A stretch of 63,890 bases of DNA, the filler included, from Hyphochytrium catenoides (Eukaryota; Protista; Hyphochytriomycota), in assembly GCA_900088475.1 (NCBI GenBank). It is 11 parts of 11 records of this genome, joined end to end, with 100 filler letters (N's around TTAATTAATTAA, not from the genome) between each part and the next. Parts side by side here need not be neighbours in the genome. Positions count along the whole stretch, not along the records: positions 56,472 to 60,987 come from FLMG01002895.1; 10 more parts are not named here. The stretch is one strand, 5' to 3'. The notes beneath the pieces were generated by a model, which saw only the letters and a program-made list of their open reading frames with translations, did not search any database and was not told where the DNA came from. Positions 56,209 to 60,987 of this stretch are shown here, one piece after another. The stretch's first letter is position 1; each line of letters opens with the position of its first letter. A program made the position numbers and the translations under genes.

Positions 56209-57031
56209 AAGGGACAGAGACAGAGAGACAGAGACAGAGAGACAGAGACAGAGAGACAGAAACACAGAGAGAGAGAGAAAGAGAGAAGGAGCCAAAATGA
56301 GAGTAAGAGAGGGGGGAAGAGGTGGGAAGAGAAAGAGGGAGAGAGAGAGACCAGAGAGAGAGAGAGAGAGANNNNNNNNNNNNNNNNNNNNNNNNNNNNN
56401 NNNNNNNNNNNNNNNTTAATTAATTAANNNNNNNNNNNNNNNNNNNNNNNNNNNNNNNNNNNNNNNNNNNNCTTCTCTGGAGTGGTGGCTCGGTCTGTCT
56501 CAGTCTAAAGCTTCTCCTCTCTCTCCTTGTCGCTGTTGTTCCTTTCCTTGTCTGACTTCTGCTCAGTCTCAGTGTCAAGAGTCCCCGCTATCTCTGTCTC
56601 ATCTTGAGACGCAGCTTGATGGCCGTGCTGGCAGGCGTGCAAAGCAAACTCTCACTGTCCCGCCGTGCTTTTCCGCTGCCAGCTTTCTGGTCTGCTTTGC
56701 TGATCTCTAGAGACTCTGCGTCAACCTCCTCCAGGGCGTGACAGCGACAGTCAAAGGATGAGAAGACGCCGGAGGAAAATGAATGCTGCGCGATCGACAT
56801 CGCTCTTTGCTCAGTGAGTGGCTGATGATTAAAGGCGTGGAAGAAGAGGAAACAGAGACGAAGCAAGAGAGGAGAGGAGGGAGCAAGAACAGAGACGAAG
56901 GAGCAAGTGAGAGACGGAAAGCGGAGACAGAAGAAGAGAGAGAGGGAGAGGGGAAGAGAGAGAGAGAGGGAAGGGACGAGAGAGAGAGAGACAGAGCGAG
57001 AGAGAGCAGGAGCAAGCGAGAGAGAGGGAGA

Positions 57032-57069
<38 letters not shown>

Positions 57070-57117
57070 AGAGGAAGAGAGAGGAAGAGACAGAGAGAGA
57101 GAGTCAGAGGGAAGGGA

Positions 57118-57148
<31 letters not shown>

Positions 57149-57645
57149 GACAGAGAGAGAGAGGCCTAATTTGACAACCTGATCCCCCATCATTTTCTCT
57201 TCTTCCTCCTCTCTCTCTCTCTCAAGTTACCCTTCAGACCTGGATATACCACTTTACCATTAGCAGTATACATCTGCCTCTATCAGGGATATAACGCTAA
57301 GAAGGGATAATTATCTGGAAGAAGATCAGATGGGTCGTGTAATATGGGTATCCTGGGTTATGCGGGCATGTGGTGTTTTCTGTGAATTGCGGGTCCCCAA
57401 CCCGGATCCAGGGTCAAAATCACATCCAGATCTCACAGGGGCACCCCCGACAGCCGGTAGTGGAGATACTCACCGGCGGAATAGACGCTAACTATCATTG
57501 GGATTGTCGAGATACTCCCTCGAAGCTGCCCCTGGGTGAGCGAGGGTTGGGGTTGCGAAGCTTCGCATCTTCATTGCTGGGGCAGCAGATGTGGGAAAGA
57601 GATCATTCTTTTGTCTCTCCTCTCTCCCTCTCTCTCCCCGCCCAG

Positions 57646-57678
<33 letters not shown>

Positions 57679-57949
57679 TCTCTCTCTCTCTCCCCCTCTC
57701 TCTCTCTCTCTCTCTCTCTCCCTCTCCCTCTCCCTCTCCCTCTCTTGCTCTGTCTGGCCTCTCCTATGCCCTCTCTCTCCTGCGCCTGTCCTGCTGCAAC
57801 CTCCATCGACCACTTTCCCTCTCTTTCCTCCTCTCTCAGTCAAACTTATTGTGGGCGCTCCTCCTATCCGCGTCCTTTCTTCCTCCTCCCTCTCTCCCAT
57901 GGCGGCTCCTCCGATTCCTTCCTTCCTTCGCGCCGCCTCAAACCAACCT

Positions 57950-59470
57950 TGGAGCTTACTGGCTCTTCTTCTGTCGCCGCCATCGTAAGACAGATACGGA
58001 GACTGCAAGATAGATGGACAGGCTCAAGAGGAGCGGAGGATCGGAGGAAGCAGAGGCTTAGGCTTCGCCTCGCGCCAGCATTATCATAGGAATGGTGTCG
58101 GATGAGGTCTAACGTGGAAGTATAGTCATACTGGGTGATGATCGTTGATGAACTAGGGCATCTACTACTAGCAATGATGCGGGTGCAGCCTCTTGGTCTG
58201 GCGGTGGCCTCAGAGCACAGAGGCGGGTGCCTTGTTGCAGCTATTTATCTCCTTGAGTGGGGCCTGTGCAGGTTCAGTCGTGCTCTCTGTGATGTCCGTC
58301 CGATCCCGGACAGGTAGCTCGCTAGCGGTGGCCAACTTAGGTTGCCGCAGGACTTGTTAGCAGTAGGGCCTGGGGCTGGGTTTGGGCTACGAGTCAGCTG
58401 GAAGTACGAGTCCAACCAGAGGAGGCACGAGTGTACGTCAATACCGTCTCGTGCTCTATATCTAGCGAACCACTGGGGCGGCTGAAGCAGGCTAAAGCCG
58501 GCGCTGTTGACACTTCTCGTACTACTCTTCCCCATTGCGGCTTCTTTCTCCTCCTCTTCGTGATATACTCTTCTTCCTCCGTAGCGCCCTTCTTGCTCTG
58601 CGGCGTCTTAGGCGAAATGGTGCGTGTCCCTGAGAGAGTAGCCCCGTCAATGACGGAGCAAAGCTGCCAGAGCTAAGGAAGATATCTGAGATCTAGGTGG
58701 AACATATACCACTGATCGATACGCTAGGCAGCTACTAGCCGTAAGGAATAAGCAAGAGAGCATTCCCTCGTTTCATACCACTTCTTTCTTCTCCAAGATG
58801 GTCTGAAGACGTAAGAGGGCAAGAAAAAGCACGCACCAATCTTCACAACCGATCGTTGGGTCGAGTAGGCGACGTGATGTCCATCCAGGACAGCCAGGAG
58901 CCAGATAGTCTGCTAGTATCTCCGACCGCGCCCCACTACGCCGCCACATTATCCCAACGGCGGGCTTAGAACAAGAGCAACGTAGCTCAAGCGAGCACTA
59001 TTTTCATCCCCCATTGAGGTCTTTCGTCCTATGTCGCTCATCGTGCCTTGTTGTTATTAGCTTATGATGGAGAAGATGGGGTACATCGCGATAATGAAGG
59101 CAATGGGGACAACAACTTCTCAACAGCTTGTGCTCTCCCAGGGCACGCGCATCTGATGTCGGCAACTATGTGTTCTTATCCCGCTAGTGACCACTGGCTG
59201 CGTCGGCCCTAGCTCAAATGTACCATTATCCATGAGCAAGTAGAGGAGAGTGTCCTATGTCTTCTCTCTCATCTCCTCGACTTGATAGATGATGACCTCA
59301 TAGTTCACCACGCTCGAACGGCGTAGTACCGTCAGGACATGCCTCTCCTTGTCGATCCAAGAGTCCTTGCCAAAGAAACACTGCTGCAGCGTCACCCACG
59401 GCATCAGAGACAAAGGAGCAGTAAAGCAGTGTCTACTTCGAGTGCCAAGCTTCTCCTCTGCGTGGCTGAC
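57950..59470 (-). pseudogene. Decayed coding sequence (probably repeat/TE-derived) riddled with TAG stops
   Basis: The DNA is microsatellite-free and coding-like. In 58141-58530 one minus frame has 9 TAG, 2 TGA and 1 TAA in Gln/Pro-rich context. No family was recognised. Confidence 0.5.
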
Positions 59471-59972
59471 ATGGTAGTAAGGCCGCTAGGTTTAATGACG
59501 CCGCTAAGTGATAATAAGAAAAGTTCTTGAGTAAGAAGAGAAGAGGGCTCACAGGGGCACGAGGTAAGAGAAGAGTAAAAGCAGAAAGTACTGCCTACTA
59601 CGAAGAGTCTTTGCAGCTACCCGCTTACTAATATCGACTCTTCGTCTCAGTTACTGACTCAGTCCGTCCCAGAAAGAAGGTCGTCCGAGCGAACTGACCG
59701 AGAAAGAGAAGTGATGGTCTCTAATTGTCAGTTCTTCCTGGTCCTTCGCCCAGGTGGACTTCCGTGGTCTGTCGGATCAAGTCGTACCAGATCTTGCTTC
59801 TCAACAAGAAGACGAGCAGCGCAGCAGCTTAGTCTTTAAAATGAAACTTGCTCCTTGTTATATATATTATTAGCCAGTGTTCATCATGGTCATGGTACCA
59901 TGGAAAGAAGAGCTAACAAAAGAAGAAAGCTTGTCTCGAGAAGAGACCATTGGCAGCTTCCTTGCTTGCACC

Positions 59973-60987
59973 TCAGACGTCTCTCCATTGAATGTTCTCC
60001 AGCATCCCATAGCGGTCATCTCCTGGTCCAATGCCAAGAGCTCGCCACACGGCATCAGAAGCATCTGTTTGTAGAGAGTCATGGAAGAAAGGGACAGCGC
60101 AAGGTGACATCTCTCAGTGCTCACATCCACGACAATGATAAGCCTACAATCTGACTATGTCTGAGGCTATGAACGGCTCTTACCGACGATATTGTTCCGG
60201 CAAGGAGGTTGATAGGCGTGGTTATAATCACAGCCAGCGCGGGAGTCACACTCATCAATAACCGTGGCGCGAACTTTCCGCCCGTTGGCGGAGATCTCAA
60301 TCTGCTTGTGACAGCGACTTCTATCGGCAAACCAGCCCGTGGACTGCGCGAAGGATGTGGGGCGAAGAAAAGAGCATAACACGTTAGCATCGGTCCCTGC
60401 TCTCTATGACAATCTCTTCGCATTCATGGCCTGTCGGCGTGCTTACCAGGGCGACGATATACTCGGTGTTCTCGTGGTGCTGACCGTCACATGAAGCCTC
60501 GCCACCTACGTCATTGTAGCAGTAGACAGTGAGAGAAGAGAGACAGAGTTATGCTTGTCCAAGGAAGAATAGAGGTTGCGGGAGATGGCCCGGCGTAGGT
60601 GGTCAATGTAGAGGTAGAAAAGAGATGACGGACCTCTTTGATGGGACTCCATCACGGAGATCTACGGTCAAAGAAGCAGCAAATAGCAAGAGAATGCGGA
60701 CTGACCTCCATCTTCTCCCTCGCCGAAGCCATTCAGGGTCAAAGTAGCGGGAGTGGCGCGTGAGACCGCGGGTGAGCAGTAGTACTTAGGATAGCGCTCG
60801 CCCTCCTTGCAGCATTCTGAGTAGTGACCCGTGTTGCACTCTTCCACGTATATCCCATCGAGGTAGCCCTGAGGCCGGCATGTGCCGTCCGATGGCGGTG
60901 GTGCAGGGGCACCTCCCTGGCAGATGTTCGTGCCCATGTCAGGATCGTCATTGCATTTTCCGCGGATGCATGCAAGCTGCCCATCGC
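59973..60987 (-). CDS. KWL: Kissper-Kiwellin (ripening-related, Barwin-like double-psi beta-barrel) protein, 5' end cut by contig edge; exons 60987-60706, 60505-60447, 60343-60184, 60064-59973
   Basis: Spliced product: (C)[196 protein letters not shown]. The three GT-AG introns have consistent phases (1,0,1). Confidence 0.95.

Follow-up and report, generated by a model that had tools for sequence, protein, structure and literature searches.

The window examined here is a stretch of 63,890 nucleotides from Hyphochytrium catenoides (GenBank assembly GCA_900088475.1) and is made up of 11 parts joined end to end. One of these, the piece at positions 56472-60987 (FLMG01002895.1), was read on both strands and carries a kiwellin gene on the minus strand that is made up of four stop-free exons and three GT-AG introns. 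Exon 1 (60985-60706) is partial, as its 5' end is cut by the edge of the piece, and it encodes the C-terminal 22 residues of the Kissper domain, a proline-rich linker, a cysteine-rich insert (CN..S.CC) and a CSP..LTLNGFG..DGG stretch. Intron 1 (60705-60506; 200 nt, GTCAGT...TAG) is in phase 1 and falls within the second glycine codon of DGGG. Exon 2 (60505-60447) lies between this intron and intron 2 (60446-60344; 103 nt, GTAAGC...CAG, phase 0), in which a branch-like GCTAAC (60383-60388) lies 39 nt upstream of the acceptor and precedes a pyrimidine tract. Exon 3 (60343-60184) encodes the predicted double-psi beta-barrel core from STGW to QPPCRNNIV. Intron 3 (60183-60065; 119 nt, GTAAGA...CAG) is again in phase 1, and exon 4 (60064-59973) supplies the C-terminal tail (..DDRYG...WRDV) and ends with a TGA stop codon at 59975-59973. 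All of these features lie on the minus strand. The spliced product is 196 aa long with no internal stop, and its N-terminus is missing, since the reading frame is still open at the edge of the piece. The GC content of the introns is 0.47-0.53, against 0.57 for the exons. Public contigs from the three sequencing runs that contain the piece (X1, X2 and X3, see below) extend beyond position 60987, by approximately 203 nt in X1 and X2 and 158 nt in X3, and 203 nt is room enough for the missing start of the Kissper domain and a signal peptide.

The product is a kiwellin by both profile and sequence comparison. The Pfam KWL1 model (PF24300), which has a curated cut-off of 27 bits, matches both exon 1 (E 1e-14, 55.1 bits) and exon 3 (E 1.3e-19, 71 bits). 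The solved kiwellins 4PMK and 4X9U and maize KWL1 (6FPG and 6TI2) also match both halves, with E values of 1e-13 to 1e-18 (for 4PMK, 1.7e-17 with exon 1 and 8e-18 with exon 3), and share 55-60 % identity with the spliced product. Each of the 13 cysteines in the 196 aa aligns with a position that is cysteine in 9-11 of 11 full-length kiwellins. The part of the Kissper domain that is present (DGQLxCIxGKCNDDPxxGTxIC) includes three of its six cysteines, and the first three lie beyond the edge of the piece. The C-terminal tail follows the pattern seen in Closterium, bryophytes and lycophytes and not that of the angiosperm Kissper-kiwellins. In the published survey of the family, kiwellins are set apart from Barwin-like proteins by a kiwellin-type double-psi beta-barrel with a beta-hairpin (PMC9813671). 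The gene looks intact as far as the piece reaches, and the match is not due to chance.

An earlier, sequence-only reading of this DNA had described a stop-free four-exon kiwellin gene, and the GT-AG junctions together with the Pfam KWL1 and PDB kiwellin matches bear this out. The kiwellin motifs that it quoted, and the CN..S.CC insert, are all found in the spliced product. Its remarks that the introns are not AT-rich and that intron 2 has a gctaac motif agree with the measured GC content and with the hexamer located above. It had also drawn attention to the presence of both modules in one protein. The Kissper part and the insert are indeed both there, but the combination is not special, as it is usual in Closterium, mosses, Selaginella and Cryptomeria.

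For the identification of relatives, the large searches were run exon by exon and the spliced protein was used in local BLAST. An exhaustive HMMER search with exon 1 over 1.8 billion representatives returned 111 matches, and the best of them are only 55-65 % identical. These are a moss-like transcript (P0001), a protein of Closterium sp. NIES-65 (P0002) and a protein (P0003) encoded by a 1.4 kb genomic contig of run SRR28521184 (locus L003). With the spliced protein, the best matches were the Closterium NIES-68 and Naga37s-1 proteins at 60 %, followed by a EukProt entry labelled Leptophrys vorax (58 %), angiosperm Kissper-kiwellins (52-58 %), Selaginella (54 %) and mosses (51-56 %). The named matches that were looked up were all from streptophytes, except for the Leptophrys entry. 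No relative came out of two metagenome scans, one run with exon 1 and the other with exon 3, a word-index search found no match to the exon 1 ORF and only seven, from plants or unnamed sources, to P0003, an exact look-up of the exon 1 ORF gave no record, and a feature search of the ESM Atlas gave no usable match. Two JGI metagenome contigs (L006 and L007) encode moss-like kiwellins (P0115 and P0230) whose genes are intronless and in which the Kissper domain is duplicated; kiwellins of this type recur on many metagenome contigs, one of which, of 61 kb, has genes of a Ty1/copia-type retroelement.

The nearest relative of exon 1, at 65 % identity, is encoded by positions 850-1385 of L003 (Logan, SRR28521184). 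It has an intron of approximately 60 nt at the same position and in the same phase as intron 1 of the window gene, and the GC content at third codon positions (GC3) is 0.603 in L003 and 0.604 in the window gene. The L003 protein has a hydrophobic, signal-like N-terminus and a longer glycine- and proline-rich linker. The window gene is thus a member of a small separate lineage with the intron habit of its genome.

The structure of the gene differs from that of its plant counterparts. All six land-plant kiwellin genes that were checked are intronless, the length of the gene being that of the coding sequence: Selaginella (696 nt), Ceratopteris (669 nt), Ceratodon (711 nt), the moss-like metagenome contigs (711 nt), Ilex (642 nt) and Cryptomeria (735 nt). 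The two introns of the Closterium genes, in NM|SDCC and DAG|QDGGG, have no counterpart in the window gene, where the introns lie in DG|GG, IVAL|STGW and NNIV|DAS. Hence, as the land-plant orthologues lack introns and those of Closterium are elsewhere, the window gene is not a stray land-plant gene. Near-identity to a plant gene with shared intron positions, which the sequence-only reading had named as the mark of plant contamination, was not what we found: the best identity is 55-65 % and the land-plant genes have no introns to share. A hornwort or Selaginella host had been considered on account of the short introns and a GC content near 50 %, and was dropped given the intronless land-plant kiwellins.

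Kiwellin genes with introns were found in three Closterium (Zygnematophyceae) assemblies, namely those of NIES-68 (L004:3001-4320), Naga37s-1 (L005:3001-4003) and NIES-65 (P0002). They lie on contigs of 0.4-6 Mb beside ordinary genes, one for an MBOAT protein and one for a protein kinase, and in the NIES-65 model two kiwellin modules are fused in tandem. With introns, large contigs and ordinary neighbours, these genes mean that the kiwellin family is not restricted to land plants, and they put its origin before, or outside, the land plants. The suggestion that the family is older than land plants, raised earlier from the window gene, is therefore backed independently. A family-wide survey had previously placed the origin of kiwellins in land plants and considered them absent from other organisms save for one chytrid sequence, A0A4P9WPM3 of Blyttiomyces helicus, which is the sole non-plant kiwellin reported, was placed near the root and was judged unlikely to be contamination (PMC9813671). 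No paper linking kiwellins to the Zygnematophyceae or to Hyphochytrium was found in the searchable literature.

A phylogenetic analysis of 52 kiwellin sequences was performed using IQ-TREE. The backbone of the tree is unresolved and the window gene branches from it outside every supported clade, nested in no donor group, so that the tree does not point to a donor. Its partner in the best tree is L003, with weak support (68/29). Constraining it to group with the conifer Kissper clade was marginally rejected (p-AU 0.039), and constraining it to group with the Closterium clade was not rejected (p-AU 0.315). The latter result bears on the possibility that the host is an unsampled streptophyte, either an alga or an early-diverging land plant, that inherited an ordinary green-lineage kiwellin vertically. 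The protein is consistent with such a host, being of a basal streptophyte type with Kissper and insert, a tail like those of Closterium and Selaginella and its top full-length matches in Closterium, where the genes likewise have introns. However, the intron positions are not those of Closterium, the land-plant orthologues have none, and the allelic pattern described below does not fit cultured streptophyte algae or bryophyte gametophytes, which are haploid. We consider this explanation unlikely.

The tree also bears on whether the kiwellins might be an ancient eukaryotic family of which scattered members persist, without any transfer, in streptophytes, one chytrid and one stramenopile. The backbone position of the window gene, which is not nested in a plant clade, and the placement of the B. 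helicus sequence near the root could both be read in this way. Against it, the named matches among the 111 and 121 recovered include no oomycetes, diatoms, other fungi, animals or chlorophytes, and very many independent losses would be needed. Had the split occurred at the base of the eukaryotes, an identity to plant proteins far below the observed 55-60 % would be expected. This possibility appears very remote.

The EukProt Leptophrys vorax protein (P0124, EP00475) forms a sister branch to the Closterium proteins (100/95 support). Leptophrys is a vampyrellid amoeba that eats algae, and for these two reasons P0124 is probably a prey sequence in the transcriptome. It shows that kiwellins can enter protist data sets via prey, and so the window gene might similarly come from contaminating DNA, whether from pollen, algal food or a co-cultured plant or alga. 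That the piece carries no host marker gene is in keeping with this. No marker or housekeeping gene was recognisable on its 4.5 kb, and hence there is no physical link of the kiwellin gene to a host gene. None of ten ORFs taken from its remaining 3.5 kb matched a Pfam family, no tRNAs were found on the piece and, by eye, its other long stop-free frames are mostly GA/CT low-complexity sequence. The (GA)n repeat on this contig that was reported earlier is real: an imperfect array occupies 56924-57163 and is followed by a short CT run, the pair folding back on itself (56862-57225). A (TC)n array of approximately 67 copies with 79 % matches lies at 57614-57745. The public contigs break at both arrays. 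Many Rfam matches to microRNA families were seen at 57100-57240 on both strands, all of them far below the gathering scores (41.7 bits for the best, where 80 would be required); a microRNA was rejected and the GA/CT structure is read as a low-complexity hairpin.

Evidence on where the piece resides comes from three public runs of one study, two of 2011 from one sample and one of 2017, which hold 83-101 Mb of contigs each and in all of which the piece is present. None of the public runs containing the locus is an RNA run. The public contigs covering the piece fall into two variants that are approximately 2 % apart and have a depth ratio of about 1:1 in both the 2011 and the 2017 libraries (example variant depths 214/433, 241/446, 232/477 and 239/466). 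Among the allelic differences listed, two are in exons, both of them synonymous, and the indels are found only in introns, with a 3-nt deletion and a 1-nt insertion both within intron 3. This pattern looks like that of a conserved gene in a heterozygous diploid, and 1:1 variants 2 % apart are unexpected for haploid algal or bryophyte cultures. The k-mer depth at the piece was 23-35 in X1 and 300-480 in X2. From the read counts in the H. catenoides genome paper, the expected diploid 31-mer depth was computed to be approximately 26 per GAIIx lane and approximately 550 on the HiSeq lane (PMC5795050), near the values for X1 and X2, respectively. The depth in X3, from the same sample as X1, was 2-5 against 23-35, a misfit for two similar lanes.

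These values can be set beside the published description of H. catenoides ATCC 18719, a saprotrophic stramenopile (hyphochytrid) isolated from pine pollen and sequenced on two GAIIx lanes and one HiSeq lane as an update of an earlier BioProject (PMC5795050). The uncollapsed assembly is 107 Mb, the genome is diploid with an SNP frequency of 0.0275, and there are 3.64 introns per gene with a mean intron length of 208 nt (PMC5795050). The mitochondrial genome is 54 kb by physical mapping (PMC5795050). The published assembly passed GC-coverage and tetramer screens for contamination (PMC5795050), which speaks against foreign DNA as the source of the piece, as does the depth, which is that expected of the main nuclear genome, two haplotypes at 1:1 being seen in both of the libraries, which were prepared six years from one another. 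Moreover, no sequenced plant or alga is nearer than 60-65 %, the land-plant genes, including that of the conifer, are intronless, and a conifer affiliation was marginally rejected. Contamination therefore seems quite improbable.

The findings are best explained by an old, intron-acquiring transfer of a kiwellin gene from a streptophyte into a non-plant host, and we think that this is probably what occurred. The gene would be a functional nuclear kiwellin with Kissper domain and insert, and the genome in which it resides would be small, diploid, heterozygous, rich in introns and most likely not that of a plant. The horizontal source of the gene would be a streptophyte, either a zygnematophyte alga or an early-type land plant, and the transfer would be old enough for the gene to have gained at least three spliceosomal introns and the base composition of the host, with purifying selection then keeping it intact. 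The product is predicted, from its relatives, to be secreted and locked by disulfides, with a knottin-like Kissper peptide at its N-terminus and a double-psi beta-barrel after it; the signal-like hydrophobic segment with which P0003 starts points the same way. It would presumably work as an extracellular binding protein and not as an enzyme, on the model of maize KWL1, which clamps the secreted fungal chorismate mutase Cmu1 (cited in PMC9813671). The target could be a protein encountered on pollen, from either a competing microbe or the plant substrate.

A broader proposal, which we put forward only tentatively as it is more doubtful than the transfer itself, is that two unrelated zoosporic osmotrophs that colonise pollen, the hyphochytrid with its L003 relative and the chytrid B. 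helicus, hold the sole non-green kiwellins. These would have been gained by capture from streptophytes or by passing between the two, and the secreted protein would be used on pollen. In plants, kiwellins are known to serve in defence by disarming enzymes that pathogens secrete. If the proposal is true, then together with the Closterium genes it would overturn the published view that kiwellins originated in land plants and are found only in plants. A copy in a stramenopile saprotroph would represent a rare plant-to-protist transfer of an immune-type gene that is long-resident, intron-bearing and selectively maintained, and would provide a tractable, culturable system for the role of kiwellins outside plants. 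Neither kiwellin, barwin nor plant-derived transfers are mentioned in the H. catenoides genome paper and its supplements (PMC5795050), and the main text of a 2026 study of horizontal gene transfer in osmotrophs likewise does not mention them.

Among known kiwellins, those of three non-seed plants, Selaginella moellendorffii (SELMODRAFT_443242), Ceratodon purpureus (M758_9G165300) and Physcomitrium patens (PHYPA_008152), have the layout of Kissper domain, cysteine-rich insert and double-psi beta-barrel that is predicted for the window protein. All of the cysteine columns and the type of C-terminal tail match, and they share 51-56 % identity over the 196 aa. However, the non-seed plant genes are intronless whereas the window gene has at least three introns, and it lies outside their supported clades. 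Full-length identity is highest (60 %) to the Closterium proteins (CAI5992497.1, CLOM_g23069 and the Naga37s-1 homologue), which agree with the window protein in architecture. Their genes bear introns, but their GC3 of 0.75-0.79 differs from the 0.60 of the window gene.

Actinidia kiwellin (4PMK and 4X9U) and maize KWL1 and KWL1-b (6FPG and 6TI2) share with the window protein a near-identical core, DECDSR.GCD...QPPC.NNIV. Kiwifruit kiwellin has no cysteine-rich insert and maize KWL1 has no Kissper domain, whereas the window protein has the insert and part of the Kissper domain. Binding of the chorismate mutase Cmu1 is a property shown for the maize proteins only. A parallel in way of life is offered by the published B. 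helicus protein, which, as is probable for the window gene product, belongs to a zoosporic saprotroph growing on pollen (PMC9813671); B. helicus is a chytrid fungus, whereas the probable host of the window gene is a stramenopile.
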